Assembly (NCBI GenBank): GCA_965240325.2
Contig: OZ251228.1
Coordinates: 1,860,001 to 1,924,000 of the forward strand
Reading direction: 5' to 3'
Length of the DNA: 64,000 nt
From: Rebecca billardiae RCC1528
Lineage: Eukaryota; Protista; Haptophyta
The position numbers and the translations under genes were made by a program. Position 1 is the first letter of the stretch; each line of letters opens with the position of its first letter. The notes beneath the pieces were generated by a model. It did no database searches and was not told the DNA's origin. It saw only the letters and a list, made by a program, of their open reading frames with translations. Of the stretch, positions 8,981-49,262 are shown in pieces.

Positions 8981-11509
8981 CTATGGCTCGCCGCTCTCGG
9001 CGAGCCGCTTGTCGAGGTGCAGCACCGCCTCGTTGAACGCCTCGAGCGGCGCGCGCGACATGCCCGCACCGATCTGCCCGACGCCCGCCTCCCTGTGCGC
9101 GATCCCCGTGTTGATCGCCGGCCGCTGCGCGAGCGCGACCACGCGCGCCGCGTCGAGCAGCATCGGCACGCCCGCAAAGTCGAGCGCGGGGATGAGCATC
9201 TCGGGCCACGTGCCGCGCGAGCAGTACACGCGGCCGGCCTCGGCGGTGTACCGGTCGGCGTCGGCCGCGGTGCCGCCGACGAACGCGAGCAGCGCCGGCG
9301 CCGCCGCCATCGCGGGCGCGCCAAAGCCGAGCGTCTCAGTGATGGACGAGTCGCCCATGTCGCGGTTCGCGTCCTGCGCCGAGTAGCCCTTGAACCAGAC
9401 GGCGGAGGGGACGAGCGGCGAGGGCGCGGTGAACCACACCGAGGCGGGGGCCGCCTTGGCGCGCTTCGGCCGCGAGCCCTCCGCCGCGGCCGTCGCGCCC
9501 GCCACGCGCACGCCGAAGCGCACGCCGTTGCGGCTGAGCGCGGTCGTGAGCGTGCAGTGCTCGATCCCGACGACAGCGTCGAGCGCCACCTTGGACGCGG
9601 CCATCACGACGTTGAGCCCGAAGTGCGCGTTGCCCGAGATGAAGCGGATGCAGCGGCTCGCGGTCTCCGCGCTCAGCGCGGGCGGCGCGCCGTCGCGCGC
9701 CGCGGTGAGCAGCGTGAGCGGCGGCGCGAACGCCTGCACGAGCAGCGAGGTCACGGCCTTGCACCGGTTGTGTCCCTCGTCGCCCATCGCGAGCGCGTGC
9801 CCGAGCGGCGGGCGGATGGCGAGTCCGAGGCGCTCGGCGGCGTGCGCGCCGTCGTGCGCGCTCGCGCACGCCTCCGCGCGCATGTGCAGCAGCGCCGCGT
9901 CGAGCGCCGGGCCCAGCCCGTCGCGCATCCAGCGCAGCCGCTCGAGCACCGCCTCGGCGTGCGCGCCAAAGCGCAGGCACTTGCCCAGCCCCTCGTTCAG
10001 GTTGCAGAAGGCGACGGAGCCGGGGGGCGCGCTGGCGGGCGCGTCGGCGGCGGCCGCGGCGTGCGCCGCGTCGGCGTGCCGCGCGTCCACCACGACGAGC
10101 ACGGGCATGCTCGGCGAGATGACCCCCGCCATCGGCCCGACCGCGCGGTGCTCGTGGCACGGGGCGAGCGCGACGCCGCCCGAGCGCGCGAGCGCCTCCG
10201 CCGCGGCCGCGTCCGCCGCCCAGCCCTCGAGCAGGATGGCGCCGACGATCGCGCCGCGCATCGGGCCGCACATGCCGACGAAGCCGCCCGGCACGGGCGG
10301 CCCCGCGTGCAGGATGAGCCGCGGGCGCTCCGCCGCGGACGCCGCGCCGTGGATTGCCTCCCAGGCCGGCCGCACGCGCGCGAGCACGGGCCAGACGCGC
10401 GCGAGCTTGGCGGCGGCGGCGCGGTTCGCAGCGAGCACGGTCGGCGAGCGGAGGAGGCGGCAGGCGGCGTCGAAGACGCGCGCGGGGACCTTGGACGTGT
10501 GCGGCGGGTGCGAGGGGACCTCGGCGGCGGGCACGCGCCGCGCGTCCTCTGAGCCGAGCTCCGCGCCCGCGCGCCGCGCAATCATCTGCTCGCCCTGCGC
10601 GTCCAGCAGCATCTCTCCGCCGCCCTCGCCGTCGACGCCGTCGTCGTCCGCGCAGCCGAGGGCGCCGCGCACGAGCGCGCCGAGCTGGGGGCCGTACGCG
10701 TCGCGCTCGCCGCCGAAGCCCGCCGCGATCGCGAGCGACGCCAGCTCGGCATCGTCCCAGCGCCCGCCGATGCGCGGGGCGCTGGCCGCGCCGCCGCCGC
10801 CGCCGCCGTCACCCGCGCTGAGCACGGCGCGCGCGGCGGCGGCGGCGCGCGCGTCCAGTCGCGCCTCGGCGGCGCGTAGGCCGGCGTCCACCGCTGATGC
10901 GTCACGCACCCGTTCGAGCGGCACGCCCGCCAGCTGCGCCAGGCCCTCGGGGAATGAGGTCAGATTCGGCGTGCCACCGGCGCCTGCGGCGCCCGCAGCG
11001 CCGGCGCGCGGCGCCATCTCGACAAAGGTGGGCGCGTGGAAGCACGCGACGACGGTGGGGATGCACGCCTCGCGCAGCGGCGTCGGAGTGCCCGCCTCGT
11101 CGGCGCCCTCCGCCGCCGCCGCGCGCACGAGCGCCACGACCGCGGGGGAGGTCTCGGGCGCCGTCAGGTCGATCCTCACGGCATCCGGCGCAATAGCGAG
11201 ATGGCGCGGCTCGCCCAGGAGGCACGCGGCGAGGACGCGCTCGTCGATGAGGTACACGGCGTACAGATTGGCGTCCTCGCGCCGCCCAGTCACCACGTTG
11301 GCCGGGTTCACCCGCCCCGCTGCGGGCGGCGCCGCGTACTCGCGTGCGCCTGGCTCCTTGATGTCAAGGTGCGCGCGCACGCCGCGCACGACAGCGTCGC
11401 CGACGAGGATCGCAGGGGTCTCGGGGTGGTCGAGGTTGCGCCGCAGCTCGAAGCCGTCCTGGAGCGTGCCGGAGACGGCGAGCAGCACGCGGCGGCGCGC
11501 GGTGGGCAT
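8981..11509 (-). CDS. Fusion: N-terminal GGCT-like (allophanate hydrolase C-terminal-related) domain + DUF1116 (YlbE/YahG, AllG-like) domain
   Basis: DUF1116 motifs LILHAGPP, MCGPMRGA, PCHEHRAVGPMAG, NLNEGLGK.LRFGA, MGDEGHNR, DMGDSSITE, INTGIAH...GQIGAG; N-terminal LLAVSGTLQDGFELRRNL; ATG at 11509. Confidence 0.8.
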   Translation of the reverse strand: MPTARRRVLLAVSGTLQDGFELRRNLDHPETPAILVGDAVVRGVRAHLDIKEPGAREYAAPPAAGRVNPANVVTGRREDANLYAVYLIDERVLAACLLGEPRHLAIAPDAVRIDLTAPETSPAVVALVRAAAAEGADEAGTPTPLREACIPTVVACFHAPTFVEMAPRAGAAGAAGAGGTPNLTSFPEGLAQLAGVPLERVRDASAVDAGLRAAEARLDARAAAAARAVLSAGDGGGGGGAASAPRIGGRWDDAELASLAIAAGFGGERDAYGPQLGALVRGALGCADDDGVDGEGGGEMLLDAQGEQMIARRAGAELGSEDARRVPAAEVPSHPPHTSKVPARVFDAACRLLRSPTVLAANRAAAAKLARVWPVLARVRPAWEAIHGAASAAERPRLILHAGPPVPGGFVGMCGPMRGAIVGAILLEGWAADAAAAEALARSGGVALAPCHEHRAVGPMAGVISPSMPVLVVVDARHADAAHAAAAADAPASAPPGSVAFCNLNEGLGKCLRFGAHAEAVLERLRWMRDGLGPALDAALLHMRAEACASAHDGAHAAERLGLAIRPPLGHALAMGDEGHNRCKAVTSLLVQAFAPPLTLLTAARDGAPPALSAETASRCIRFISGNAHFGLNVVMAASKVALDAVVGIEHCTLTTALSRNGVRFGVRVAGATAAAEGSRPKRAKAAPASVWFTAPSPLVPSAVWFKGYSAQDANRDMGDSSITETLGFGAPAMAAAPALLAFVGGTAADADRYTAEAGRVYCSRGTWPEMLIPALDFAGVPMLLDAARVVALAQRPAINTGIAHREAGVGQIGAGMSRAPLEAFNEAVLHLDKRLAESGEP

Positions 11510-11694
11510 CGTCGGTCGGTCGGCCGCTGAGGTCGCAAGGGCGATCGAAAGCCGAAAATGCCGAGGAGGCGACGACGACGACGTGCGGCCCGAGAAGGGG
11601 TCCACCCGGCTGCCCCGGCAAGGGTGGACCACCCTTGGCCCCGGAGCCCTCCAGCGCAGTCCAGCGTACAAAAGTTCGTGACGCTGGCTCCACG

Positions 11695-12708: not shown

Positions 12709-12983
12709 TGAACACCTGCTGCCTCGCGCCGCCCACGCCCGCCACCCGGCGCACCAGCACCTCGGCGTTGCCGCGCGAAGTCATCGAACCTGCTGTGAGT
12801 GTGAGTACCGTAGCCCTAGGTAGACGATACTGTACGTTAGAGAAGTACAGCGGTACAGTACCCGTATTGTACTCGTACAATACGACGCGTACAGTATGAT
12901 AATTACGGTGCGGATGCACAGGGGACACTGGGACAGGGCACAGTCCTCGAGCGCACGGATCCACTCGACATCAACGAGGAAGA

Positions 12984-13445: not shown

Positions 13446-13819
13446 TTTCTGTCGAGATGACGCTATACGAGCATCGAGACAGCGCCGTCGGGACCGTCTC
13501 CCGAGCCTGCATGGTCATCCCACTTGGCAATCGCGGCTCACAGAACTCCGTACTGAGTGAGCAGGCGCAGCTGTCACTCGAAGAGACTCGGAGTCTCAGA
13601 CAGCAGCAGAAGAATGTGACGAGTCACTTATTGTCAGCCTCATTAAGTCAGCAGACGCCCGTATGTTATTATATATATATATTAAAAAAACTATATCGTT
13701 TGCTCATGTGACAAGACGTTCACACACTCCGGAAGATGATAGTCAATCCGCCGTGCGGGCTACACAGCGCTCACTAGTAACTCGCGGTGCGTGTGTCCTC
13801 GTCCGATGCTGCCTCGCCA

Positions 13820-16800
13820 TCAGTGCATGACGTGGGGCGATACGAGCCGGCCGACGAGCTGCTCGAATGCGAGTGGTAGCGGCACGACGCTGGATTGATG
13901 GTGCTGCACGAGCACCGGTCGGCGCATCCCGTTGCACCGCAGATGCGCGAAGCGCACGAGGCACTCGCGGAAATCGAAGAAGGACATGTTGATGGTGGGC
14001 ACGAGGCTCTCGTCTGCGGGCGGCAGATCGTTCATCTCGCACTGCGTCATCAGCACCACGCGGCGCGCGCTCGCCATCGTGAGCTTCACGTCGAGCAGCT
14101 GCGAGCGGCGCAGCATCGACATGAGCTCCTTCACCGACATCGACTCGTAGTGGGTGCCGTCCCGGTCATCGTGTGCCTGCGGCGGCAGCAGCGGGCGGAG
14201 CATGGCGCGGGCAGCGGGGAGAGGAGGGCATCGCCTGAGCGCGCGCCGCGCGTGCCGCTCAGCGGCGCGCGGCGCTCTCCGCGCGCGAAAACGCGCGCGC
14301 ACCGCCCAGCTGACAAACATCTCCCGCAGCCGCGCGTCCAGCCTCGCAAACGCGGCGCGCATCTCGACCGAGTCGTGCATCAGCTTGCGGAAGGGCTCCT
14401 CCTCCGCGAGCACCTTGCCGCTCTCGTCGGGCAGCGCGTCCGAGAGCTGCCTCACCAGCGCGTCGCAGCTCGCGTTCAGTGAGAGGTGCGGGTAGCGCAC
14501 CGCGGCGATGCGCACAATCACCTCGACCAGGTGGTGGATTTGGATCGGCGGAGTGCCAAGGACGGCGCCGGCGACCGCCTTCTTCGCGTCCTGCAGGCGG
14601 ACGACCTGCACGACGACCGCGTCGATGGCGCCCTGCGAGAGCGTGCGCGACGGCAGCTGCGCCAGCTTGCACAGCCGCCACCACTCGAACCCGCCGATGC
14701 CCTCCACCGTCCTATCGAGCTCGTTCATCTGCGCACGCACGCCACGCGCCGCGCGCGCCACGCCGCGCGTCGCGCCGCGCCACGGCGGAGGATCAGCAGC
14801 AGCGCGCAGAGCGCGGAGTGGAGGGGCGGGCGGCACGCGAGGCACAGCCCAGCGGCGCGGGCGCGCGGGCGCGCGCGCGCGCGCGCGCACCACGGGCAGC
14901 GCGTGCGACTTGAAGATCTTGAGCAGCGTCTCAAAGTGCGGCTGGATCGCCTTGCGGGCCTCGTGCCGCAGCGAGCGCTGCTTCTCCGACGCCGCGTCCG
15001 CGAGCGCGCCCGCGAGGTTCGCCTCCTTGCCCTTCTTGCTCGCCTTGGGCGCGGCGGCGTGCGCGCGGCCCGTCGCGAAGCGCCACGCGCCGCCGGTGCC
15101 GCCGCTCGCCTTGGCGTGCGTGAAGGTGACCCGATCCCACGCGTTCTCAAACTCGGCAAGCCAGGGGTTGGCGCGCAGCGCGGCCGCGGCGACGCGCGCG
15201 CGCGTCGCCTGCCGCTGGCGCGAGAGCTCGTCCAGGCTGAGCCCGACCTCGAGCCGCTGGCGCAGGACCTCCGAGCTGCCGATCCGGACGACGATCTCGA
15301 CGGAGCCGTGGAGGAACGGCGCGGCCGAGACCACGCGCCGCTTCCGCCGCGTCCGCCGGCCGCCGGGGCCGCCGCCGGCGCCGCGCCCCTTGAACGACGA
15401 CGCGTCGCCCGAGGTCGCGTCCTCCTCCTCTGACGAGCTGGACGAGGGAACGACCGTTGCAGCCTGCCCGGACATCAGCGCCGCCAGGTCGCTCTGCTGC
15501 TCCTGCCGCGCGACCATCGCCTTGCCGTCGAGCGGGTAGTGCTCCAGGCTCGACGGCGGCGGCGAGGGCACGTCGCCGCCGTCGAACGCGAGTGCGTACA
15601 GGCCTGCGTTGAGAGAGTGTGGCGCACGGGTCGCGGCGCGGGGTGCGGCGGTGAGGGCGACGCGCGCGCGCCGCGAGAGCGCGCGGGCGGATGGCGCGGC
15701 TTGCCGGCGCGCGGGCACGCTCGGTGCCCGCACTGGCCATCGCCTTGCGGGCCTGGCATGCGGCCGCGCGCGACTCCGCGGGCCTCGCGTGCGCCGACCG
15801 TGCGCAGCCGCGGCCCGCAAACTGATCTTTCCCGCGCGCGCTCGCTCCCGCGCGCGCGCCCGCACCTGGCTCATCGCCCTCGACGCGTCTCAGCTGCGCG
15901 ACCGGCGGCTCGCGCTCGCCCGCCGCCTGGTGGAAGCGGAACGAGCCCCACCACGCGCCGCCGCCGCCGCGCTCGTCGGCGGCCTTCACGATCTCCACGT
16001 GCATCGACGACGCCTCCGCCTCGCCGAACTCTGAGCCGTGCGGCCGGGTGTTACCGTACATGTCCGTGACGCGCAAAAAAAGCATATGCTGCGGAGCCGG
16101 GGGCACGCTGAGCGGCTCGCCCGGCGCCACGCCCGGCGGCGCGGCGACGTCGACCAGGCCCGTCCTGCTGAGGAGGTGCGGCTCGCGCGCCGCCGCCGCC
16201 GCCCGCGCCGCGGCCGCCATCGCGTCCTCCGCTCTCAAAAACACGCGCGCCACCGAGCCGCCCTCGAGCGGCTGAGCCGACACCCGCAGCCGCACCGGCG
16301 CGTTCGCCGTCGCCCCGAGCCGCCACGCGGGCGAGTGCGCCGGCGGCACGTCGGCGGGCGTGGCGCCGGCGGCCGCGGCCGCGTTGGCGCGCGGGCTGGC
16401 GCACCGCCCGTCGGCGGCGTCCGAGGCCGCGCCGCCTCCCTCGCCGCCCCCGCCGCCAGCCGAGCCCTGCGCCATGCACACTCGTATCTCATACTCCCCC
16501 GCCACGGTGAGCTGCAGCGTGGCGCACTGCACAGAGCGTGGCACCGCCGCGACCGCCGCGACCGCGGGCACGCTCTGCGCCGCGCTCCTCGCCGCGACCG
16601 TGACCATGTGCTCTTGCGCGTCCTGCGTGCGCCCGCCGCCGCCGCCGCCGCCGCCCGCACCGACGCCCGCGTGCCGCGAGACGGACGCACACGCCGCGGC
16701 CGCCGCGGCCGCCGCCTGCTCCAAGGCCTGGCGCGCGGGCGGCACGAGCTGCGAGCTGGGCGCTACGACCCCCGACGCCTGAGCGCGCGCCGCGCTGAAC

Positions 16801-19800
16801 ATGCGCAGGTGGCCCTCCATCACCATGGCGGAGCGGCGTGTGCGGCGCGGCGAGAAGCCGCCCTCGATCGCCGCGCGCGCCTCCTGCACCGCGCGGCTCA
16901 CCTCCTCGTCCATCGCGCTGCCCACCGCCTCCGCCGCGGCGGGCACGCTCGCGCACGGCCAAGCGACCCCGGCCCACGCAAACGGAACCAAGTTTTTGGC
17001 CTCGTCGGCGTCGGCGGGCGCGGGCTCCGGCGCGGCGCGCGAGCCGTGGCGGCTGCGACGGCGCACGGGCGCGGCGGCGCGGCCCACGGGCCCCACGCTG
17101 TGATGCCGCGCCACCGCCGCCGCCCCTCCGCCGGAGCGCCGCCGGCTGCTGGGAGGACCGTCGAGCAGAACTGGAGCGCCGGCGCCGTCGCCGTCCGCGT
17201 CGTCATCGTTCACCTTGACCGCCGCGCACACCACCACGTCGCCCTCGTCGAGCGCGCGGCAGTTGCCCAGCGCGTCGCGCGAGACGACGACCACGCGCAC
17301 GTCCAGGCCGGCCGTCGCCTCGATCATCCCAAAGTCGGGTGGCGGCGCGCCGCCGCCGCCGCCGCCCGCCGCGGACGGCGGCGCCGGCGTGGGCGGGCCT
17401 GGCCCGCCACCGCCCGCGCCGCCGCCGCCGAGTCCGCCTCCGCTTGACGTCGATCGCCGCCGTCTGCGCCGCCCCTTGAGCGCGGGCTGCTCGGCGATGA
17501 CGAAGGTGGGCGAGTTGGCGGGCGTGGTCGCGTTGGGCTCGATCCGGATGCGCAGCTGGCCGGACCAGCGCAGCAGCGACACAGCCTGTGCGCCGTCAAA
17601 CAGCGAGCTGCGCCGGAGCGCAAGGCCGACGCCTCGCGCGGACTCGCCGCCGCCGATCACGGCGAGCTGCTGCTCGTCCGCGGCGGACGTGAGCAGGTCG
17701 GGCTGCGGCGGCGCGCCGGCGGCGGCGGCTCGGCTCCCGCGCCCGCCGCCCTTCGCCACGAGCACCGAGCCCACCGCCTCCTCGTTCAGCGTGAGCTCCG
17801 CGTTGAACTCGCCCGCGGTCGCGCCGACGACGGCGATCGCGTAACTGCCATCTTCGTTGTCGATCACTGTGACGCTCGGCATGCCGGCGGGCGGCGGGAG
17901 CGGCGGCGGCGGCGGCGGCGCGGAGGGCGGCAGGTGCGCGAACGGCAGCGCGCTCCGCCGCCCCGAGCCCACAAAGTCGGAGAGCTGGAACGTCGGCGGC
18001 GAGGGCGAGCGCTCAGCGCGGCCGCCCGGCGCAGCGCGCCGCGCGCCGCCGGCGCGCGCCGCGCCGCCGCCCGCCGCCTCGCCGCGCGCCGCGCCGCCGC
18101 CACCGCCGCCGCCGTCGGAGCCGGCGTCGGACTCGTCGCTCGACGACTCGTCATCGTGCGCGCTCCAGCAGCCGTCGGCCGGCACGACAGCCAGCGCGAC
18201 CCGGTCGCCGCCCGTGACGCGCGCGCGCCGCGACGCGTCCATCGCGCGCAGCAGCAGCGAAGCACGCACACCCGCCGCGGTGCTCAGCTCGGTGGCTGAG
18301 GCGACGGAGTGGTGCGCGGCGGAGACGGCGGAGAGGAAGAGCTCGGTCTCGTCGTTCGTGAACTCCCGCGCCTCCGCGCCCGTCCCGTCCGACACCGACA
18401 CGTCCACGTACAGCGCGCCCTCGCCGAGCGTGCTCGAGAGGTCCGGGAGAACCACAGCCATCAGCGTGTCTGACAGGATGGCAGCCGGCACCGTCACCAC
18501 GCCGGGCGCGCGCGAGCGCACGGGGCGCAGCGCGCGCGCGACGCTGGCCGAGACGTCGGCGAGGAAGGGCTCGGGCGCGCGCGGCTGCGCGTCGTGCGGC
18601 GCCGTCGTCAGCCGCACGAGCGGCGAGTCGCACGCGCCGGGCTCGCCAAAGCCGACGCCATGCACAATCAGCTCGATACCGCCGCGCACGTCTGCACACG
18701 GCGGCTCGACTGCCCACACCGCCGTGCGGCGCAGCCCGAGAATGCGCACGGCGCAGCGCGGGCCGGCGCGCGCGGACGCGTACGCCTGCGCCGCTGACGC
18801 GGGCGCGAGCGCGCTGCTCATCCCGTCGATCAGCGGCGGCACGCCCACGGCCAGCACGCGCGCGCCGTCGAGACAGACAAGACCGGCGTCTGCGGGCGCG
18901 CGCGCGCTCTCCGCCACGGCGGCTGCAAGCACCGCTCGGCCGCCCTGCCCGTCCAAGGCGGCGGCGGCGGCGGCCGCGAGCCTGCTCGCGTCCGCCGCCC
19001 CGCCGCCCGCGCCCGTGCCCGCGGAGGACAGGAGCTTGGCCGTCTGCGCGCGCGCGAGCAGGCCTGGGCCCACCGAGCGCGCGCGCGCCCCAAGCGTCGG
19101 CGGCTGAACCGTGCGGGCGACGGCCTTGTCTGTGGCAGACGGCGGCTGCGCGCGCACGTCCGCAGCCCACGTCGCGCGCTGCACGGGCGGCAGCGCCGCG
19201 GCCGACTTGGCGCGGCCGAGCGCGCACGCCGCGGGCGCGGCCACCGCGCCCGCGCCCTTGTGCGCTGCCGCCGAGCGCTGCTCGCCGCCCGCCGCGCCCG
19301 CCGCGCTCGGTGTTGCGTCAAGCGGTGCTCGCGCGTTCAGCAGCAAGGTAGCATCGGACGTGCTCGCGCCGGCCGTGAGCGGGCGCGCCGCGGCGGCGGC
19401 GGCCGCGCGCAGCGGCACCGGCACCACCGAGCCGCCGCCGCCGTCGCCCGCCGCGTGCCCGTACCGCCAGCGCAGCTCGACGGGAGGCGGCGGCGCGGGG
19501 TGCGCCAGCTCAACACCCGCCGCGCGCGCGGCGAGCGTGGCCGCTTGGGAGACCGCGCGCGCTCGCTGCCCAATGTAGGTCACGGCGAGGAGCGCGATGG
19601 GCGCGGCCATCCCGAGCAGCCCCTGCTGCCCTCCGCCCAGCAGCAGCTCGCCGCCCGACGGCAGCGCCGGCGCGCGCGCGAGCGATGCAGCCGCGGCCTC
19701 CGCCGAGGCGGCCTCGACCGCTCGCGCCGCGCTCGCGGCGCGCGCCGCGGTGGAGGCGGAGGCGGGTGTGCCACGCGAGCCGCCGCTCGCGCTGCTCGCT

Positions 19801-19977
19801 CGCGACGAGCCGAAACCGCCGCCGCGCGCGCGCGGCACGGCGAGCATGAGCGCACCGTGGCTGCTCATGCCGTCCGCCTCGCTGCCCGCGCCCGCAGCGC
19901 CGCCGCCCCCCGGCGAGCGGAGGCCGGAGCCGCGCGCGCGCGCGCCCTCGGCCACACCCGCACCCGCCAACCGCGGC

Positions 19978-20020
<43 letters not shown>

Positions 20021-21435: not shown

Positions 21436-21470
<35 letters not shown>

Positions 21471-23303: not shown

Positions 23304-23343
23304 CCCCCCCAATGATGGCACTTGCAGCAGCAGCAGACGTTAC

Positions 23344-24763: not shown

Positions 24764-24775
24764 TGTGTGTGTGTG

Positions 24776-36428: not shown

Positions 36429-36429
<1 letters not shown>

Positions 36430-36466
<37 letters not shown>

Positions 36467-36498
36467 TACATATACATATATATATATATATATATATA
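36430..36498. repeat. (CA)n/(TA)n compound microsatellite
   Basis: Direct reading. Confidence 0.95.
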
Positions 36499-38795: not shown

Positions 38796-38850
38796 TGATC
38801 GGCTACGCCGATCTTCGGGTAGTGAACAACGAAGTTGAGGGCGCACGGCC

Positions 38851-39777: not shown

Positions 39778-40852
39778 GCCGTTCGGCGCGCCTCCCTCGT
39801 CCGTGCCGCCACCACCGCCCTCGCTCCCTTCAGCCGCCCCCCCGACGCCTCCGCCTGGCCGCTACACACGCCGCCGCGCGCCCCACGCGATCGCACCGGG
39901 AAAGCCGCCGACGTGCCAGTTGGATCGTGACTGTCTGTTCGCGAGTCCAGACGATAGAGCATCACAACGCGTCGATCACACCCGCATTGGCTTTGATCGA
40001 ATCAGTTTGCAAAAGGGCTGAGCGGAATCTTGAATCAGAACTGCAATTATTGACCTTTACGCTCAGGCTGTCTAGGACACACTCAGCACACTTCTTTCAT
40101 CAATCAGAGAGCTTTAATCCTCGCAGATAGAGATGTCGAATCCCACCCGCATTGGGCCAAGAAGTCGCCACTAGGCCATTTGTGCTATTCAGCGAGGGAA
40201 TTGTCCTATTAGTATCTATGCCTGCACAAAGAGATTATTAATACGAGCAGGGGAATCGGATAGTACGAACGCAATCAAGCGTCATCAAGGGGGTTGAATG
40301 CCATTCACTAGCAACTCTCCCCCTGCTACAAGTACAAAATCCCCACCAGCATCACGCGCGCCATTATCTTTTTTGATTTTGCGGAGCACGTGCACCGCCC
40401 CCCCCGGCTTTCGCTCACGCTCAGACCTTTCGGGGGGGGCGTGCGCCATCATTATATTCGATCGATCTTTGATGTCGTCGTCAGTGACGTAACGACGACA
40501 TCAGCGCCGACAGCGCCGGGGTCCCCCCCCAGCAGTCATGCTCGTCCCGGATGGCACTAAGCCACTATAGCTTATTACAGGCAGTTAATAGTTTACTGCT
40601 AACAGTACGTCGTATAAACCGAAACGCGAGACGAGCGCGCGCGCTAGTCATCAGCGCAATTAATCGCCGATCGCCTGAGCGAGGGCCCGCTCTGAGGCGG
40701 TCCGCCCGCGAGGCCGTGCAAGTCCGTGCTCGTCTTTGGAGTCATGATCAGTCGTCTATAGATCGGATAATGACGGGCCCCGCGTAGATGACTGCTTCGC
40801 GGCTCATGCCGCCACCGGCGCTCTTTCCCCTGCTCGTACCACCCCCGGGGGC

Positions 40853-41872
40853 CTACCCCGCCTTCTTCGCCGCAGCCTCAAAGTTGGAGCGCACCCGGCC
40901 GAGCAGGTACTCGCCCGCCGTGATGGGCTCGTGCCCGTCAGACTCGATCACAGCGTCTCGGTCCGCCTGCATGAAGAAGGCGATGGAGTAGCGCGGCCTG
41001 GGCGGGGTCGCCTCCTCCTTGGTGGGCATGCGTACGCGGTGCAAGTTCGACAGCAGCCGCCCGTTCGACCAGCGGCCGAGCATGTCGCCGATGTTGACAG
41101 CGATGCCGCCCTCGACTGGGTCCACGCGGAGCCAGCCACCGCCCGCGCCGCCAGTCGCGCGCGGGTTGGCCGCGCACTCGAGGCCCTCGTTGCCCGGGCG
41201 CTGGAAGAGGAGGGTGACGCAGCACCAGTCCGTGTGCGGCCCCGCGCGCCAGTACCCCGCCGGCATCTCCTCCGGCTTCTCCACCGGCGGGTAGTGCAGC
41301 AGGCGCAGCGTGCACTGGCCCTGAGGGCCCCACAGCGTGTGCGAGCGCGCAAGCGTGCCGGCCGCGTTGGACGGGCAGGCGGAGGGCTCGAGGAGGGAGA
41401 GAACGCGGCAGCCGAGTGCGTGCGCCTGGTCCATCAGCGTGCGCACCGCCGGCTCGAGCTCCCCGGGGTGCGACGGCCAGCGCCCATCCATCGCGCCCTC
41501 ACGCGCCGTGATCTGCAGCGACTCCTTCTGATCTGCCGTGTTGGTCGACGGGCGCACCTGCGCCATGTACTCGTAGCCCACGTTGTGGTCTTTCATGAAC
41601 GGCGACTGAGTGGCCTTGATCTCGCGCGGCTGCGCGAAGAACCCCGCCGACGCCTCGAACGCCGCGTCGATCGTCTCCTTGGCGATGCCGTGGTGGACGA
41701 GCGAAAAGAAGCCGACCGAGCTGGCGGCATCGAACATCTCGCGGGAGCACGCCTCGTCGTCCTGTCGCATGTCGATGGTGGGGACGGCGCCCTCCGCCGC
41801 CTCCTTGGCCCCGAGGCCCGACGCCAGTAGCTCGCGCTCGATCGCCACCTCGGCGGGCTCGTCGTCGGGCAT
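40853..41872 (-). CDS. 2OG-Fe(II) oxygenase (isopenicillin N synthase/DIOX family), copy 1
   Basis: GFFSLVHHGI, LRLLHYP, HTD...H facial triad (GPHTDW, SNLHRV), RYS motif. Confidence 0.92.
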   Translation of the reverse strand: MPDDEPAEVAIERELLASGLGAKEAAEGAVPTIDMRQDDEACSREMFDAASSVGFFSLVHHGIAKETIDAAFEASAGFFAQPREIKATQSPFMKDHNVGYEYMAQVRPSTNTADQKESLQITAREGAMDGRWPSHPGELEPAVRTLMDQAHALGCRVLSLLEPSACPSNAAGTLARSHTLWGPQGQCTLRLLHYPPVEKPEEMPAGYWRAGPHTDWCCVTLLFQRPGNEGLECAANPRATGGAGGGWLRVDPVEGGIAVNIGDMLGRWSNGRLLSNLHRVRMPTKEEATPPRPRYSIAFFMQADRDAVIESDGHEPITAGEYLLGRVRSNFEAAAKKAG

Positions 41873-42099
41873 CCCGCCACGTCCGCAGCGCCCCTTCGCG
41901 CGAGGTACCAGACTTGGTCCAGGAAAATGTGACGATTCACCGAGTTCCCGCCTTCCCGGACGCAACTCCAGAGAGCGTCTGCGCACAAGGCTCGCGCTAG
42001 CCGGCCAGGTCGATTACACCGGCTGCACCAAGGGGCCTTCATTCGGCAAAGCCGGGCGACGCGCGCGCCAGCCGGTGCGCTACGCACAAGCTGGTCGGC

Positions 42100-43311
42100 A
42101 TGGTCGACGTAATGAGCCCCAAGTGTGATCACACCGGCTGCACCAAGTGGCCTTCGTTCGGCATGCCGGGCGACGCGCGCGCCAGCCGGTGCGCCACGCA
42201 CAAGCTGGCCGGCATGGTCAACGTGGTGAGCCCCACGTGTGATCACACCGGCTGCACCAAGGGGCCTTCGTTCGGCATGCCGGGCGACGCGCGCGCCAGC
42301 CGGTGCGCTACGCACAAGCTGGCCGGCATGGTCGACATCAAGAACCCCAAGTGTGATCACGCGGGCTGCACCAAGCAGCCTTCGTTCGGCATGGCGGGCG
42401 ACGCGCGCGCCAGCCGGTGCGCTACGCACAAGCTGGCCGGCATGGTCGACGTGATGCACGTCAAGTGTGATCACGCGGGCTGCACCACACAGCCTAAATT
42501 CGGCATGCCGGGCGACACGCGCGCCAGCCGGTGCGCTACGCACAAGCTGGCCGGCATGGTCGACGTGAAGAACCCCAAGTGTGATCACGCGGGCTGCACC
42601 ACGCGGCCGTACTTCGGCATGCCGGGCGATACGCGCCCCAGCCGGTGCGCTACGCACAAGCTGGCCGGCATGGTGGACGTGGTGCACCCCAAGTGCGGTG
42701 AGGCCGGCTGTACCACACGGCCTTCGTTCGGCATGCCGGGCGACGCGCGCGCCAGCCGGTGCGCTACGCACAAGCTGGCCGGCATGGTCGACGTGAAGAG
42801 CCCCACGTGTGATCACGCGGGCTGCACCACACGGCCTTTGTTCGGCATGCTGGGCGACGCGCGCGCCAGCCGGTGCGGTACGCACAAGCTGGCAGGCATG
42901 CTTCCGCTGTCACGTGGCAACAGCAGCGTTCACGTGGCCAAGAGCTCGGCCTCCATGCACTCCCAGATCGGTCCCAGCAAACGTCCCCGGGCACAGCACT
43001 GCGTTGCCGATGGGCCTGCACGTGCTCTGCGCGCAAGGCCCAGCATTGCCCTGCTGCCTGCCAATGCAACAGGCTGGCCACAAGGCGAGGCGACTGTGTC
43101 TCCAATGCTGCTACCCATTGTCGTGGGCGAAGAATTCATCCCCTCTGGCTCGATGCAGCCGCAGGTCGTGGGTCACCTTCAGACTCAGGATCATCCAATG
43201 GCATCCGTGTCGGCGGTGCTCCCGCCAGAGGCGCCAGAGCTCCCTGTGGTTACTGTGGGTCAGATCGACTATACCACGCGCGCTGGTCAGCAGATTGACG
43301 AACTGATATGA
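42100..43311 (+). CDS. EsV-1-7-type repeat protein, copy 3 (7 repeats)
   Basis: Seven 38-aa units; different tail with PSKRPR; frameshifted extra unit at about 42010-42099. Confidence 0.85.
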   Translation: MVDVMSPKCDHTGCTKWPSFGMPGDARASRCATHKLAGMVNVVSPTCDHTGCTKGPSFGMPGDARASRCATHKLAGMVDIKNPKCDHAGCTKQPSFGMAGDARASRCATHKLAGMVDVMHVKCDHAGCTTQPKFGMPGDTRASRCATHKLAGMVDVKNPKCDHAGCTTRPYFGMPGDTRPSRCATHKLAGMVDVVHPKCGEAGCTTRPSFGMPGDARASRCATHKLAGMVDVKSPTCDHAGCTTRPLFGMLGDARASRCGTHKLAGMLPLSRGNSSVHVAKSSASMHSQIGPSKRPRAQHCVADGPARALRARPSIALLPANATGWPQGEATVSPMLLPIVVGEEFIPSGSMQPQVVGHLQTQDHPMASVSAVLPPEAPELPVVTVGQIDYTTRAGQQIDELI

Positions 43312-43342
43312 TGACGATTGCTGATTTTGCTGACGACATCTA

Positions 43343-44181
43343 TGAGGCCCGCGTTCCGCGGTCCTTTTCTGCATAGAATGAACGCAGTTGGGGGGCCCGC
43401 GGTGGCCGTGCAATCGCGGCTCTCCGCCGTAGTGGCAGTTCGCCAGTTGAAGTCGGTTATTCTGAGATGACGGAAGCTATTAGTCCGACCGTCGCCCTGC
43501 TTGCGCGACCGCGAGACTCATTCACACTTCACACAATCACAGCAGCGGACCTGAGACCGCACCCGGCACCGGTCGTCAAATCGGACGTAGTCCGTCTGAC
43601 AACTAGCTGCCAAATGTCCAACTGGCTGATCAACTCGGATCCGACCCGTCCGCGATCGTGCCATCGGCGGCATCGGACGTCCGTCTGACAACTATTACTA
43701 CGTCTACTAGTAGAGCTGCCAAACTGTCCAACTCTGGCTGATCAGCTCGGATCCGACCCGTCCGCGATCGTGCCGAGTGAGTCGTGCCGCGGAGCTCGGA
43801 GCCACTGAAGGAGTCGGGTGTGACAGCAGGGTGCTTTAGCGCTGCGGCCCGTGCCAGCCAACGACCAGACGTACTCTGGCCACTTGACCCGTTGCACGGG
43901 TGAGTGACCGTACGCCCTGCCTACCGCGCGCGCCGCGCGACTCGGGGTGATGGAGAGCGGATGGCGACAGCAGCAGCAGTCCTCATGAAGACGATGAAAC
44001 TGGCGGCACGGGTGCACGAGGTGGCAGGCGAAAGCGCGCCGACGAGACCGCATTTGACACACCTGAGCCGCACGCGCGTGCCGTCGCCGAGCGGCGAGCG
44101 CTGCCAAACGCGCAACTACCGCGCGCGCCACGACGGCGCGGCACTAGCTGATGCAGGCCGTACTGCCGGCACTGCTTCTGC
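43343..44181 (-). mobile_element. 5'-truncated inverted copy of element A (element D)
   Basis: Reverse complement of about 25330-26141 including the subterminal repeat and hairpin. Confidence 0.8.
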
Positions 44182-44185
44182 CGCC

Positions 44186-44312
44186 TGCAGGGCGGAGCGC
44201 GTAGCGTGGAGCCCCGCCGGGGGCCCTCACTACGTTGTCAAAAAGATCTTTTGATCAAAGAAAAGGGGACGGGGGACGATTTTCAGGGCTGTTGGAGGGT
44301 GAGTTTTCGATT
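44186..44312 (+). mobile_element. 5'-end fragment of the same family
   Basis: tgcagggcggagcgcgtagcgtggagccc...tcaaaaagatcttttgatcaaagaaaaggggacggggg. Confidence 0.7.
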
Positions 44313-44762
44313 AACGGCCCGATGTCGTGCGTCCCCAAGCGCATCAACGCGTTCCGCATGCCGAGCCGGTTCGCGTGCGCGTCCAGGAATCAGGATTTCT
44401 GATCCGACGATGTCTTGCGCGACCAGAGTGCGCGCGCGCCCGCGCCCCCGCGTTTGACAATTGACTGCGGTCGAGGGTGACCCACTGGTCATCGCGGGGA
44501 ACGATCGCCGGACCGCCCAGTGGTTCCGGAGTGGATCACTGTTGTCTGGTGCTGGGCGGAGTCCGGCCCCGGGCATTATACAATAATAACCAAATATGGC
44601 GCAGATATTCGTTTACTGACAACGAGTGACGGCCTTCGAGCTTTCTTATTACTCACGTCCGGGCGCGCCTATTTCGGCAATCGCGTCTTGTCGGAATAGA
44701 CAGCAATGTACGGAATGTACCCCTCAACCCTCATATATATATATATATATGTGCGGCCGTCA

Positions 44763-46028
44763 TCACGCCGCGGCGCGCAATGCCAGCAGCTGCGGCCGCA
44801 GGCAGCGCAGCAGCCGGCGGTGGCCCTCCCCATTTGGGTGCAGCGCGTCAGGCATCAGCTCGCGGGCGACGATCGGGTCTTGCCACTCACGCGCGTCCTC
44901 GCCTGAGCCGCGCGCTTCGGCGCTCCCGCTGAACCGCCGGCGCTGCCGCTTGGCGACGAAGCTCCACGACGGGAAGAGCATCCGCTCGCCGTTGGGCGCG
45001 GCGCGTCGGAAGATGTGACCGCAGCTGGCGAGCGCAATGCGCCCGCCGTGCTGCGGCGGTGCGCTGACGGCGTCGGCAGCGGCGTCGGCGCGCATGGCCA
45101 CGCTGAGCTCGGCGACCACGCGCGCCAGCCCGCGGTTCGTCTCCTCCAGCACCGCCTCGAACGAGCGCATCGGCCGGCCGCCCTCGTCGCAGCGCGGAGG
45201 GCAGATGCGCTTCAGCACCGGTCTGTCATTGCGCGGCAGCAGGCTGTTCACCAGGACGGAGGCGCGGCTGTTGTGCAGCAGCCAGCTCGCGACGGCGCGC
45301 ACGCCGGCAATCGTCTCGTTCGCCGTGTGCCCCTGCCCGATGTTGTTCGTGCCGATGTGCAGGTTCACCACCGCGCGCGCGCGCCGCAGGCCGGGTGGCA
45401 GCTCTCCGTTCTGCAGCCGCCACAGCAGGTGCTGTGTCTGGTCGCCCGAGATGGCGAGGACGAGGGAGTGCGCGAACTCGGACGGGTCGAAGGCCGCCTG
45501 CAGCGCCTCGGGGGCGCCCTCGCACCGCGCGGCGGGCTGCCCCAGCTTCGTGCCCACGTAGCTCTCCGTGATCGAGTCCCCAATCATGAGCAGCGCACAC
45601 GGCGGCTCGGCAGCCGGACCGACAGCGCTCTTCTCGTGGAGCCGGTGCTCGGCGGCGGTCAGCTCGGCTTCGGCCTGACGCGCTAAGCGGATGTTGCGCC
45701 GGTGGGTCTGCCACCACGACAGGCAGAGGCCGCGCGTGTTCACCGTCACGTGCGTGCGCGGCGTTGGCGCCGTGGCGCGCTCGTGGCACTCGCCCTGCGA
45801 GGTGCACATGCGCACGTGCTTGTCGAATGGGCCGAGCGCGGCGCACGCGCGGTCCAGGTCCTCGTCATGCTGGGACGAAGCAACGGCGAGGGAGGCATTC
45901 GTCGGCGCCGCCGCGCCGAGCGCCAACGCGCCGACGACCGCCAGGCCGAGCAGGTGGGTGCACCTGCGCCGCGCGCCACGTGCAGCGTCCGCCATCATGC
46001 GCGAATGATGAGCAATCTTATTCAGCAC
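44763..46028 (-). CDS. SGNH/GDSL hydrolase (PAF-acetylhydrolase-like) with N-terminal hydrophobic segment
   Basis: MIGDSITE, AISGDQTQHLLWRL.NGEL, HIGTNN, MPDALHPN. Confidence 0.88.
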   Translation of the reverse strand: MLNKIAHHSRMMADAARGARRRCTHLLGLAVVGALALGAAAPTNASLAVASSQHDEDLDRACAALGPFDKHVRMCTSQGECHERATAPTPRTHVTVNTRGLCLSWWQTHRRNIRLARQAEAELTAAEHRLHEKSAVGPAAEPPCALLMIGDSITESYVGTKLGQPAARCEGAPEALQAAFDPSEFAHSLVLAISGDQTQHLLWRLQNGELPPGLRRARAVVNLHIGTNNIGQGHTANETIAGVRAVASWLLHNSRASVLVNSLLPRNDRPVLKRICPPRCDEGGRPMRSFEAVLEETNRGLARVVAELSVAMRADAAADAVSAPPQHGGRIALASCGHIFRRAAPNGERMLFPSWSFVAKRQRRRFSGSAEARGSGEDAREWQDPIVARELMPDALHPNGEGHRRLLRCLRPQLLALRAAA

Positions 46029-46161
46029 ATAGATGAGCTAGGCCGTTCATTCAGGGCCTGAGAACTAGAAAGTAGATAGATGACAGCAAGTATCCGTCTT
46101 TTTCAGGCCGCGCAGGCACCGCCAACCGGCGCGAGCGCGCTCCTCAGCAGTGCTTCTTCCC

Positions 46162-47705
46162 AATTTCATGCTCGGAAGTCCCACAGCGGGACTTCTCCGG
46201 GCCTGCGGTACTCGCCAGTGAAAACCTCCCGCGCCCCTCGAGATCATACGGAGTTGGCGGCGAGATCGCGCTCTTGCGGCGGGCGGCGGGCGGGAGCGCG
46301 CGCCGGCGCTCGCTCGCGCGCTCGCTGCCCGCAGCGCGCGCGTCAGGTCGTCGCGAGCGCTTGCGCACCGGCGCTAGGGCGCGTGCCACCTGCGCACGCC
46401 GCTGGTTCGCGCCTGCGCGCTCTGCTCCGCCGCTGCGGCGCTTGCGAGCGCTCGCCGTGTCCTGCGCTGGTTCCGGGCCGCGTCGAAAGCCTGGTTGTGC
46501 GGCCAGCCAAGTGTGGCGTTTGCGGCTTGGCGCGCGAGCGCGCGACGCAGCGGATGGCGCGTGTGAGCCGCCCGGCCAGCTACACTCGCCTCGTGCGCCG
46601 CGTGCCGACCGCGAGACCCAGATTCGACGCCGAGCGCTGCTCGGTCACGGTGAGACGGGTCGGCGCTCCGCATCGCAGAGCCGCGCGTGGTCGCGCAGAA
46701 GAGGCCGCGCGTGGCCGGCGCGGCCGCTGTGTGCCGTGGTCTAGACGTCAATTGCGTCCGCAGTAGGTGAGAACGCTTGCCTCGCCCAAGCGGTCACTCA
46801 TCTTCTGCCCGTACACAGCGCGTGACACGTGAGGTGGATTCCGGAAGGTGTCTCGAGGTCACGCCGTCACCGATCGTAGCCACATAAGCCCTTGCGTGGA
46901 AGAGCTGCGCTCACGGAGATCGTGCACGTGTCATCAGCGCGCTACCAGACCATAACCATCGAGTTCTTGAAGCCGTCTACCAATGGAGTAGGATGGATTT
47001 GTTCGAGCCCACTGCTGGCGGCACGAGATACGGCCCGGCACGCAGAGTCAGGTCAAGTCGCCCACTCGTGAGTGCGGCGTGACCGCTTGGGCAAGGCAAG
47101 CAACTGAGGACGCGATTGAAGTCTAGACCACGGCACACAGCGGCCGCGCCGGCCACGCGCGGCCTCTTCTGCGCGACCACGCGCGGCTCTGCGATGCGGA
47201 GCGCCGACCCGTCTCACCGTGACCGAGCAGCGCTCGGCGTCGAATCTGGGTCTCGCGGTCGGCACGCGGCGCACGAGGCGAGTGTAGCTGGCCGGGCGGC
47301 TCACACGCGCCATCCGCTGCGTCGCGCGCTCGCGCGCCAAGCCGCAAACGCCACACTTGGCTGGCCGCACAACCAGGCTTTCGACGCGGCCCGGAACCAG
47401 CGCAGGACACGGCGAGCGCTCGCAAGCGCCGCAGCGGCGGAGCAGAGCGCGCAGGCGCGAACCAGCGGCGTGCGCAGGTGGCACGCGCCCTAGCGCCGGT
47501 GCGCAAGCGCTCGCGACGACCTGACGCGCGCGCTGCGGGCAGCGAGCGCGCGAGCGAGCGCCGGCGCGCGCTCCCGCCCGCCGCCCGCCGCAAGAGCGCG
47601 ATCTCGCCGCCAACTCCGTATGATCTCGAGGGGCGCGGGAGGTTTTCACTGGCGAGTACCGCAGGCCCGGAGAAGTCCCGCTGTGGGACTTCCGAGCATG
47701 AAATT
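46162..47705. mobile_element. Foldback element with ~630-bp inverted arms (about 46162-46799 and 47078-47705)
   Basis: Near-perfect inverted repeat from aatttcatgctcgg to ccgagcatgaaatt; TTCTTCC occurs at both outer edges. Confidence 0.75.
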
Positions 47706-47813
47706 CTTCCACTGGGCGTGAGTCCCGGTGAACGGCAAACTCGATCGTCGAAGCAGCGGAAGTCTCGATCGCGCCTTTCTCCAGTCACTCCGCCGTCACG
47801 AGCGACGGCTGCG

Positions 47814-49262
47814 ATGGCGTCCGTGCCGAACGCGCACCCGTACGCATGGCCTTACGACGGCGCAATCAAGCGCGAGACCACCGCGCTCATCATCATCGAC
47901 ATGCAGGTCGACTTCTGCGGCGTCGGCGGTTACGTCGAGCAGATGGGATACGACATCTCGCTCACGCGCGCGCCGATCGCGCCGCTCAGCAAGCTGCTCG
48001 CGGCGGCGCGCGCCGTGGGGGTGCGCGTGATCCACACGCGTGAGGGACACCGCCCCACGCTGAGCGACCTGCCGGAGAACAAGCGCGTGCGCTCGAAGGG
48101 CATCGGCGCGGAGATTGGCGCGCCCGGGCCGTGTGGCCGCGTGCTCACGCGCGGCGAGCCGGGCTGGGAGATCATCCCGGAGCTGGCGCCACTGCCGAGC
48201 GAGGATGTCATCGACAAGCCTGGCAAGGGCTGCTTCATGGCCACCGATCTCGACCACCTCCTCCGCACCGCCGGCGTGCGCCACCTGCTGATCGGCGGCA
48301 TCACGACGGACGTGTGCGTGCACACGACGATGCGCGATGCCAACGACATGGGCTACGAGTGCCTGCTGCTGTCGGACGGCACGGCGGCGACGGACCCGAG
48401 CAACCACACGGCGGCCCTCGCCATGGTGGGCATGCAGGGCGGCGTCTTCGGCGCCGTCGCCGACTGCGACGCCGCCGCGCGCATGCTGCAGGCGCTCGGC
48501 CCGGCCAAGCCGCCGCCGCCGCCGCCGGCCGCGGCGCGCAAGGCGCCTCTCGGCGAGCTCAAGCTGCCCAAGGCGAGCCCGCGCGAGTTCAAGGCGCCGG
48601 GCTCGGGGCTCGCGCTCATCATGATCGACTTCCAGCGCGACTTCTTCGAGCCCGGCGGCTTCGCCGCGCAGCTCGGCAACGACATCTCGCAGCTGGCGCC
48701 GTGCGTCGAGCCCGCGAAGCGACTGCTCGCCGCGGCGCGCGCGGCGAGCGTGACCGTCGTGCACACGCTCGAGTGCCACGCGGCGGACGGCTCGGACCTG
48801 CCGCCGGCGAAGAAGGCGCGGTGCCCGTCGATCGGCGAGGTCCTCGACCCCGCGCGCGGCCGCATCCTCATCGAGGGCGAGCCCGGCAACGCGATCATCG
48901 ACTCGCTCGCGCCGGTGGGCGGCGAGCTGATCGTGAACAAGCCGGGCAAGGGCGCGTTCTGGCTGACGGGCCTCCACGAGCGGCTGCAAGCGGTGGGCGT
49001 GACGCACCTGCTCTTCGCCGGCGTGACGACGGAGGTGTGCGTCCAGACCACGATGCGCGAGGCCAACGACCGCGGGTACGACTGCTGCCTCGTCACCGAC
49101 GCCACCGGCTCGTATTTCCCCGAGTTCAAGAAGTCGACGATTGAGATGGTCACCGCGCAGGGCGGCATCGTCGGCTGGGCGGCGTCGGGCGACGAGGTGT
49201 GCGCCGCGCTCGGCGAGCTGGCGGGCAAGGGCTTCAGCACCGTGCCGTGCCGCCAGCAGTGA
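47814..49262 (+). CDS. Two-domain cysteine hydrolase: biuret hydrolase (BiuH)-like fused to triuret hydrolase (TrtA)-like
   Basis: Domain 1 PYAWPYDG, IIDMQVDFCG.GGYV, KPGKG, GITTDVCVHTT, MQGG; domain 2 IDFQRDF.EPGGF...LGND, KPGKG, GVTTEVCVQTT, SYFP, QGGIVGW; both Asp-Lys-Cys triads intact. Confidence 0.85.
   Translation: MASVPNAHPYAWPYDGAIKRETTALIIIDMQVDFCGVGGYVEQMGYDISLTRAPIAPLSKLLAAARAVGVRVIHTREGHRPTLSDLPENKRVRSKGIGAEIGAPGPCGRVLTRGEPGWEIIPELAPLPSEDVIDKPGKGCFMATDLDHLLRTAGVRHLLIGGITTDVCVHTTMRDANDMGYECLLLSDGTAATDPSNHTAALAMVGMQGGVFGAVADCDAAARMLQALGPAKPPPPPPAAARKAPLGELKLPKASPREFKAPGSGLALIMIDFQRDFFEPGGFAAQLGNDISQLAPCVEPAKRLLAAARAASVTVVHTLECHAADGSDLPPAKKARCPSIGEVLDPARGRILIEGEPGNAIIDSLAPVGGELIVNKPGKGAFWLTGLHERLQAVGVTHLLFAGVTTEVCVQTTMREANDRGYDCCLVTDATGSYFPEFKKSTIEMVTAQGGIVGWAASGDEVCAALGELAGKGFSTVPCRQQ

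Follow-up and report, generated by a model that had tools for sequence, protein, structure and literature searches.

A 64-kb window of the haptophyte Rebecca billardiae RCC1528 (positions 1,860,001-1,924,000 of contig OZ251228.1, or C11, in an assembly of 72 Mb and 41 contigs) carries two fusion genes that, in our judgment, rather probably serve one nitrogen-salvage route for triuret- and biuret-type ureides. One of them encodes a protein with a biuret hydrolase (BiuH)-like and a triuret hydrolase (TrtA)-like domain, while the other joins an AH_C-like module to an AllG/DUF1116-like core. On the same reading, the two genes are loosely linked and do not constitute a recently acquired island; a gene for a UreH-like membrane protein is a conserved neighbor, and a gene for a 2-oxoglutarate (2OG)-Fe(II) oxygenase is a bystander. 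An original prediction, made from the sequence alone, had named these four genes within 8981-49262, and all four are indeed present as placed. It also described the three enzyme genes as intronless, in agreement with their uninterrupted open reading frames (ORFs) and end-to-end alignment with the orthologs from Diacronema lutheri, the closest named relative for each gene tested (59-72% protein identity). The two fusion genes and their domains, with positions counted from the first letter of the window, are as follows.

8984-11509 (feature span 8981-11509), minus strand: AH_C-like/AllG fusion gene, 842 aa, intronless, single-copy; identified by Pfam AllG/DUF1116.
10910-11509, minus strand: AH_C-like N-terminal domain, residues 1-200; identified by profile-profile comparison and predicted fold.
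8984-10459, minus strand: AllG-like core, residues ~351-842; identified by Pfam AllG and by identity to prokaryotic DUF1116 proteins.
47814-49262, plus strand: BiuH-TrtA fusion gene, copy 1, 482 aa, intronless; identified by NCBIfam BiuH.
47814-48530, plus strand: BiuH-like domain (domain 1); identified by scores against biuret hydrolases in the PDB.
48570-49259, plus strand: TrtA-like domain (domain 2); identified by score against TrtA in the PDB and by conserved residues.

The true start of the BiuH-TrtA gene is at 47814 and its stop at 49262 (+), as the first 77 codons of a longer ORF beginning at 47478 are formed by a dispersed repeat with dozens of copies in the genome. The whole protein yields 590 bits against the NCBIfam BiuH model NF050097 (cut-off 370) over two stretches. 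With the solved biuret hydrolases 6xjm and 6azo, domain 1 reaches 339 and 324 bits, respectively, compared with 196 bits for TrtA 6xix; about 68% of its aligned positions, counted from the alignment, are common with 6xjm. For domain 2 the order is reversed, with 236 bits for TrtA 6xix and 195 bits for BiuH. The structures 6XIX, 6XJE and 6XJ4 represent TrtA from Herbaspirillum, in which specificity for triuret rests on subtle positioning of Q202 (PMC7948467). The TrtA residues from that study that were checked here, which serve in catalysis or substrate contact, namely the triad D24, K129 and C162, the V157-T158 cis-peptide, Q202, F29, F35 and N41, are all kept in the domain 2 alignment, the numbering of which allows for a three-residue offset of the crystallized chain. 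Judging from these similarities, domain 1 is BiuH-like and should hydrolyze biuret to allophanate, and domain 2 is TrtA-like and should hydrolyze triuret to carboxybiuret.

The BiuH-TrtA protein is 71% identical to its Diacronema ortholog (P0001) and 55-65% identical to many algal homologs. Full-length fusion homologs, with 42-71% identity, occur in Diacronema, in many green algae including Chlamydomonas (CHLRE_10g448500), in Klebsormidium and Chlorokybus, and in pelagophytes and dinoflagellates, and trtA has been mentioned in “some fungi and phytoplankton” (PMC7948467). Paenibacillus also has the fused form, adjoining a PucR regulator and a Bmp-type ABC transporter. In two homologs, P0067 from Chlorokybus and P0029, BiuH-TrtA carries an additional N-terminal canonical AH_C domain (PF21986).

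The second fusion gene is an uninterrupted ORF of 842 codons (8984-11509, minus strand) composed of an AH_C-like module of the GGCT fold, a linker, and an AllG/DUF1116-like core. Its protein matches Pfam AllG (PF06545) with 190 bits at a cut-off of 27, and the Diacronema ortholog (P0121) is 59% identical over 99% of its length. The core, comprising the C-terminal ~490 residues, is 45-47% identical to prokaryotic DUF1116 proteins of ~468 aa and retains their invariant motifs.

We sought to determine the nature of the N-terminal part, as Pfam and NCBIfam searches with the N-terminal 430 aa gave nothing, and the 200-residue module itself had no Pfam match up to an E-value of 5, PF21986 and PF06094 included. 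A profile built from the four eukaryotic N-module sequences retrieved 207 representatives among 1.84 billion proteins, all of them short and protist-like (MMETSP transcripts, a Picozoa protein and marine metagenomes), and there was no canonical allophanate hydrolase among them. When a profile of 34 N-module sequences was compared with an AH_C alignment of 26 sequences, hhalign reported a probability of 89.9% and an E-value of 1.7e-6 over 97 columns; the control comparison with AllH gave a profile E-value of 0.33, and a relation to AllH was rejected. An AlphaFold (AF2) model based on the 34-sequence alignment reached a mean predicted local distance difference test score (pLDDT) of 90.1, and replaced an initial model from only 4 sequences (pLDDT 55, Foldseek E >0.1). 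The best Foldseek match of the new model is c4763 (5c5z; E 7.8e-6), followed by Kluyveromyces lactis allophanate hydrolase (4iss; E 3.3e-5) and urea amidolyase, which together span E-values from 3e-5 to 8e-4; GGACT, GGCT and ChaC proteins rank next. The profile comparison and the modeled fold thus identify the module as a divergent AH_C-like domain of GGCT-like fold, a more precise assignment than the “GGCT-like” label of the original prediction, which was right as to the fold. The module has other partners too, since in P0258/P0397 (Picozoa) and P0293 it is joined to DUF1330 or follows a fragment of a POT/PTR2 transporter.

The surroundings of prokaryotic AllG genes were surveyed at the 80 best DUF1116 loci, taken from one genome per GTDB species, by tblastn searches of their flanks. 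AllF is present at 77 of these loci, carbamate kinase at 57, a BiuH/TrtA-family hydrolase at 43, and an AH_C gene at 36-38. If only the 45 loci flanked by 5 kb or more on each side are counted, 30 have the hydrolase and 28 the AH_C gene, mostly within 2-5 kb, as exemplified by the clusters at L007 and L006. The hydrolase of these clusters is as close to BiuH as it is to TrtA. None of the 80 loci contains a relative of the 2OG oxygenase, the UreH-like protein or the GDSL lipase of the window.

One such operon in Escherichia coli (L117; NZ_CP160112.1:4760886-4776580) codes for a cysteine hydrolase, DUF2877, FdrA, DUF1116, carbamate kinase, an “allophanate hydrolase-related protein”, a cytosine permease and LysR, and is a paralog of allFGHK. 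Its 129-aa AH_C protein is the crystallized c4763, the very protein (PDB 5c5z) that gave the top structural match to the eukaryotic N-module. A 3.7-kb query from the homologous Buttiauxella cluster, running from the 3′ portion of FdrA through DUF1116 and carbamate kinase to the AH_C gene, has at least 80% of its length covered in 1,557 of 5,426 complete E. coli genomes. In comammox and archaeal nitrifiers, trtA, biuH and atzF are co-located with allFGHK (PMC12625717).

In 27 of the 80 loci, the cluster also includes a permease-like protein with 11 transmembrane segments (TMs) that belongs to no Pfam family. Two copies of its homolog are present in the R. billardiae genome; that on C11 is some 110 kb away from the AllG fusion, and the second is on C13. 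This membrane protein family, recognizable by the motif TVYIGH..K.VGG, is matched by nothing in Pfam, NCBIfam or the PDB, occurs in algae as well as in the 27 AllG clusters, and is a candidate ureide permease. The following members were located.

C11:1980157-1981998, minus strand: R. billardiae copy near the window.
C13:28373-30193, plus strand: second R. billardiae copy.
L007:4823-6406: member from a prokaryotic AllG cluster.
L091:14338-16320: eukaryotic member on a marine contig, 1 kb downstream of a gene in which AH_C-like module, AllG core and a hydrolase domain are fused (triple fusion).

Besides the Diacronema ortholog, the only full-length relatives of the AllG fusion are two such triple fusions, P0122 and P0123, the latter representing 53 marine-metagenome sequences. 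The extra isochorismatase (TrtA-like) domain is C-terminal in P0122 and N-terminal in P0123, so that the two are products of two different fusion events. These hydrolase domains are 61% identical to domain 2 of BiuH-TrtA and 42% identical to domain 1. Other protists have the AH_C-like module joined directly to hydrolases of the BiuH/TrtA type (P0266, P0279/P0396 and P0391). By its composition, the R. billardiae protein looks like two fused genes of the prokaryotic operon, and P0122 and P0123 look like three. Because of these repeated eukaryotic fusions and the conserved prokaryotic clusters, both of which are independent of gene position in the R. billardiae genome, BiuH-TrtA and the AH_C-like/AllG protein very probably represent parts of one triuret/biuret-type ureide nitrogen-salvage route.

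We also searched the R. billardiae genome for the partners that such a route might require. It contains a single AllG locus. AllH (PF11392) had no match, and the same model did give the control match in E. coli; AllF had none with one bacterial query, in a six-frame search of the kind that can miss genes in a eukaryote; and carbamate kinase had none with one bacterial query and no family model run. No AH_C domain was detected by Pfam, nor was a canonical allophanate hydrolase (amidase plus AH_C) found, as the bacterial query matched only amidase domains, at 34-41% identity. Urease alpha is matched twice on C16, at 1808817-1809289 (+) and 1851597-1852067 (-), which are 43 kb apart and inverted, and may reflect another recent segmental duplication. 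The analogy with E. coli YlbE (AllG), which the original prediction had drawn, is not directly transferable to a genome in which AllF, AllH and carbamate kinase were not found.

Urate oxidation and urea fertilizer are both sources of triuret and biuret. In the route that we envisage, the two halves of BiuH-TrtA would act in turn, on triuret and on biuret. The AllG fusion would be a eukaryotic condensate of two genes from an operon encoding a BiuH/TrtA-family cysteine hydrolase, AllH, AllF, AllG, carbamate kinase, an AH_C protein and often a permease, and would handle the N-carboxylated products carboxybiuret and/or allophanate. We infer this role because the genome has enzymes that should yield carboxybiuret and allophanate, as well as urease, with no recognizable allophanate hydrolase. 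Nitrogen would be released as ammonia, either directly or via urea and the C16 urease. A more far-reaching version, which we regard as tentative, is that the AH_C-like/AllG fusion represents a novel type of enzyme, working without AllF, AllH and carbamate kinase and replacing allophanate hydrolase in urease-type algae, and that the C11 neighborhood, with the AllG fusion, the UreH-like gene, two copies of BiuH-TrtA and the permease, is the decayed remnant of a bacterial ureide operon.

The genes that lie between the two fusion genes, or are duplicated along with one of them, include the following.

13823-23339, minus strand: giant GC-rich gene in two ORFs, ~3,100 aa; identified by tblastn collinearity with a Diacronema gene.
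34104-35313, plus strand: gene for a UreH-like (NiCoT-related) membrane protein; identified by its HALTGPDH motif and the names of its homologs.
40856-42013, minus strand: 2OG-Fe(II) oxygenase, copy 1; identified by Pfam DIOX_N and 2OG-FeII_Oxy.
40622-49580, no strand assigned: duplicated 9-kb block with 2OG, EsV-1-7, GDSL lipase and BiuH-TrtA genes; identified by collinear blastn matches.
56984-58060, minus strand: 2OG-Fe(II) oxygenase, copy 2, within the second copy of the block; identified by Pfam.

The UreH-like gene is single-copy in the genome and has at least one intron. Its first exon (34104 to ~34905, plus strand) codes for the HALTGPDH motif, which is of the HX4DH type, and for several hydrophobic segments, and its last exon (~35032-35313) is in another frame. 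The Diacronema ortholog (P0413), itself named UreH-like, is 60% identical; the names UreH-like and Ni/Co efflux recur among the homologs, and PF13386 is present in several of them. The Atlas score is 0.91. The protein encoded by exon 1 has no significant Pfam match, the best being HupE_UreJ_2 with an E-value of 0.03, and a PF13386 search of the R. billardiae genome did not pick up the gene, which was recognized by reading the ORFs. From its motif and homologs it is a putative nickel permease, which may serve urease.

In the annotation of Diacronema, the UreH-like gene (KFE25_013513) and the AllG fusion (KFE25_013512) directly follow one another, at a distance of 9.8 kb. The giant gene of the window, which has about 80% G+C and no Pfam domain, is collinear by tblastn with a 3,049-aa Diacronema gene (L096:481-9905) adjoining KFE25_013513. 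In both genomes the giant and UreH-like genes are divergently transcribed, and the AllG fusion is on opposite sides. Of about 14 further genes that flank these in Diacronema, none was found in the 285 kb surrounding the window, so that the trio of giant gene, UreH-like gene and AllG fusion stands out against poor overall synteny. Linkage in Diacronema is seen for the AllG fusion and the UreH-like gene; BiuH-TrtA is on another Diacronema contig. A gene for a 193-aa isochorismatase-family protein, located 1.6 kb away from the AllG fusion in Diacronema (L088:14342-15300), was considered as a hydrolase of the pathway and rejected, as it yields only 31 bits to BiuH.

The block at 40622-49580 is tandemly repeated in collinear order at 56733-72906 with 96-98% nucleotide identity, the second copy being stretched by insertions. 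Consequently, the window has two 2OG copies, with 99% identical proteins, and a second BiuH-TrtA copy lies 7 kb past its end. The co-duplication is explained by segmental duplication, which also copied the unrelated EsV-1-7 and GDSL genes. The block duplication may be partly an assembly or haplotype effect. The two block copies are separated by a gap of 100 Ns (50261-50360), flanked by 99% identical inverted copies (50361-50983/55866-56488 and 50974-52609/61132-62760). A 603-bp inverted repeat, with 99.5% identical arms at 46162-46764 and 47103-47705, ends about 110 bp upstream of the start codon of BiuH-TrtA copy 1, and homology between BiuH-TrtA copies 1 and 2 starts directly after it, at 47715.

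The best PDB relative of the 2OG oxygenase is thymine dioxygenase, at only 84 bits, and at least eight distant paralogs are dispersed in the genome. No association with the other named genes was seen at the 80 prokaryotic AllG loci or in Diacronema, and the enzyme is a bystander, contrary to its predicted membership in the pathway. A 2OG-FeII_Oxy_5 gene located 7 kb from a triple fusion (L089/L090) belongs to a different 2OG family and has no tblastn match to the window oxygenase.

As to the origin of the genes, both enzyme genes have prokaryotic relatives, and their fusion architecture fits an operon origin. Their G+C content at third codon positions (GC3; 0.88-0.94) equals that of their neighbors, the real genes of the window having GC3 of 0.87-0.94 and the window as a whole 58-81% G+C. 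In a quick tree, the DUF1116 cores of the four eukaryotic proteins group in a single clade on a long branch (SH-like approximate likelihood ratio test, SH-aLRT, 100), which groups weakly (SH-aLRT 89) with an actinomycete locus carrying the hydrolase and AH_C genes; with such support, no donor lineage can be named from the sequences. Comparison of homologs indicates that the BiuH-TrtA fusion is ancient and broadly distributed among algae, and that the AllG fusion is of narrow eukaryotic range. Given these differing ranges, one joint recent horizontal acquisition is unlikely. The proposal of a horizontally acquired pathway is accordingly unsupported in the form of a single recent joint transfer, which the host-like GC3 does not suggest either.

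Several observations weigh against a shared route or against a meaning of its loose linkage. The relation of the N-module to AH_C is remote and below Pfam detection, and with AllF, AllH and carbamate kinase not found, the AllG core would have to act alone here. BiuH-TrtA and the AllG fusion are on different contigs in Diacronema, the BiuH-TrtA neighbors there are unrelated, and neither gene has the permease within 10 kb. The UreH-like genes of Prymnesium and of a metagenomic contig lack neighbors comparable to those in Diacronema. The linkage of the UreH-like gene and the AllG fusion comes together with an unrelated giant gene, and so may be inherited microsynteny. Ordinary genes lie between and around the loci, many of them housekeeping (patatin, ArfGAP, cofilin, polyubiquitin, Tpt1, SMC, RCC1 and others), and the 22- to 36-kb gaps between the named genes are filled with unrelated genes, whereas a eukaryotic metabolic gene cluster would be expected to have at least three non-homologous pathway genes in physical contiguity. 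Overall, the region is a loose neighborhood, not a compact transferred cluster.

A rival explanation is that BiuH-TrtA and the AllG fusion are functionally related, but that their proximity to each other, to the UreH-like gene and to the permease, over 40-110 kb, is a product of chance and inherited microsynteny and is devoid of regulatory or evolutionary significance; we give it an appreciable but minor probability. The separation of the two genes in Diacronema, the presence of the giant gene in the conserved trio and the interspersion of at least eight unrelated genes all favor it, as does the second copy of the permease on C13. The AllG fusion is 36 kb from BiuH-TrtA copy 1, and the nominal chance of finding two single loci within 40 kb in 72 Mb is 1.1e-3, falling below 1e-5 for three loci; these low values speak against coincidence, but all such probabilities were computed post hoc. 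Coincidence is also less readily reconciled with the retention of the trio when none of the ~14 other Diacronema flanking genes was kept in 285 kb, and with the permease gene adjoining the triple fusion on contig L091. Taken together, the chance that the physical linkage is biologically meaningful seems to us to be somewhat below even.

The AH_C-like/AllG protein might instead function in a different pathway, such as the breakdown of oxalurate or pyrimidine-derived ureides, as in E. coli allFGHK, and be unrelated to BiuH-TrtA in this genome. Pfam does place its core in the family of oxamate carbamoyltransferase subunits, clusters of the E. coli type carry a cytosine permease, and the cluster hydrolase is no closer to TrtA than to BiuH. 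We nevertheless find this improbable, as the hydrolase domains of P0122 and P0123 have their nearest counterpart in the algal TrtA-like domain, and AllF and AllH, which oxamate carbamoyltransferase (OXTCase) of E. coli requires in addition to AllG (PMC11326118), were not found in the genome. Least credible, and very improbable in our estimate, is the full model of the original prediction, a single horizontally acquired four-gene pathway scavenging nitrogen from purine oxidation products. It could draw on the presence of all four genes within 40 kb, on the intronless enzyme genes with bacterial relatives, and on the co-duplication of 2OG with BiuH-TrtA, but the duplicated block carries EsV-1-7 and GDSL genes as well, and the 2OG family has its dispersed paralogs. 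Moreover, 2OG and UreH-like homologs are equally missing from all 80 prokaryotic AllG loci, GC3 is host-like, and the BiuH-TrtA fusion is common to green, streptophyte, haptophyte, pelagophyte and dinoflagellate algae, as opposed to the one narrow eukaryotic clade with the AllG fusion. The four-gene model is largely refuted as to 2OG. What stands of it is a very probable shared nitrogen-salvage pathway for BiuH-TrtA and the AllG fusion, backed by the fusions and prokaryotic clusters, together with the UreH/AllG linkage in Diacronema.

The gene content of the window is otherwise eukaryotic, with F-box/RCC1, SNF2 helicase and EsV-1-7 repeat genes. Unrelated genes are interspersed, as had been noted, and comprise F-box/RCC1, the giant gene, the SNF2 helicase, EsV-1-7 repeat genes and the GDSL lipase. 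EsV-1-7 genes, which code for up to 10 cysteine-rich repeats of 38 aa (Pfam PF19114), are located at 3856-5922 (-), 28264-29634 (-), 42100-43311 (+) and 62272-64000; their DNA is 80-96% alike across the window, and one of them is within the duplicated block. A tandem array of ~418-bp units with 98-99% identity occupies 36981-38233 and overlaps short GC-rich ORFs without family matches.

In the searchable literature, neither the eukaryotic AH_C-like/AllG fusions nor the AH_C-like module have been described. The assignment of the GGCT-like domain is new, as are the series of fusions, the wide distribution of the prokaryotic cluster and the test of synteny, and the AH_C-like module constitutes a new protist domain family of ~200 representatives without a Pfam model. 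If phytoplankton can mineralize triuret and biuret, the organic nitrogen available to them extends beyond urea and purines to both compounds. The series from operon to fusion singles out a candidate for what follows BiuH in algae without allophanate hydrolase, and provides a lead on the substrate class of a widespread prokaryotic operon, to which the “uropathogen-specific” c4763 locus of E. coli belongs; should the tentative new-enzyme version be true, the same logic would give a function to the c4763 operon of extraintestinal E. coli. It should also be kept in mind that apparent eukaryotic “clusters” need comparative tests, as one of the four members proposed here, the 2OG oxygenase, is a bystander.

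The UreH-like protein shares the HX4DH-type motif, multiple transmembrane segments and homolog names with UreH/NiCoT-related permeases (PF13386, eukaryotic “Ni/Co efflux”), whereas its gene is unlinked to the urease genes on C16, the protein itself has no significant Pfam match, and nickel transport remains putative. The N-module resembles the AH_C domain of allophanate hydrolase (PF21986; K. lactis 4ISS) in its GGCT-like fold, its profile and its attachment to enzymes making allophanate-type products, but is longer (~200-300 aa), protist-specific, and similar only at a level below Pfam detection. In relation to the pathway of Herbaspirillum sp. BH-1, with TrtA, (TrtB), BiuH and AtzF (PMC7948467), both hydrolase domains are close homologs with the checked residues kept; here, however, the two enzymes are fused in one eukaryotic polypeptide, and no canonical allophanate hydrolase was detected. 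As in E. coli AllFGH plus AllK (PMC11326118), the C-terminal 490 residues of the AllG fusion belong to the AllG/DUF1116 family and have its invariant motifs, but in R. billardiae this core is fused to an AH_C-like domain, and AllF, AllH and carbamate kinase were not found; the protein is related to the AllFGH oxamate carbamoyltransferase system without being a member of it. The nearest prokaryotic relatives of the core are in a cluster that is paralogous to allFGHK and adds a BiuH/TrtA-family hydrolase and an AH_C protein. Compared with this c4763-type operon, the eukaryotic versions are without AllF, AllH and carbamate kinase, and their genes are spread over tens of kb; on the other hand, the eukaryotic proteins combine, within single polypeptides, two of the operon products in R. 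billardiae and Diacronema, and three of them in P0122 and P0123.

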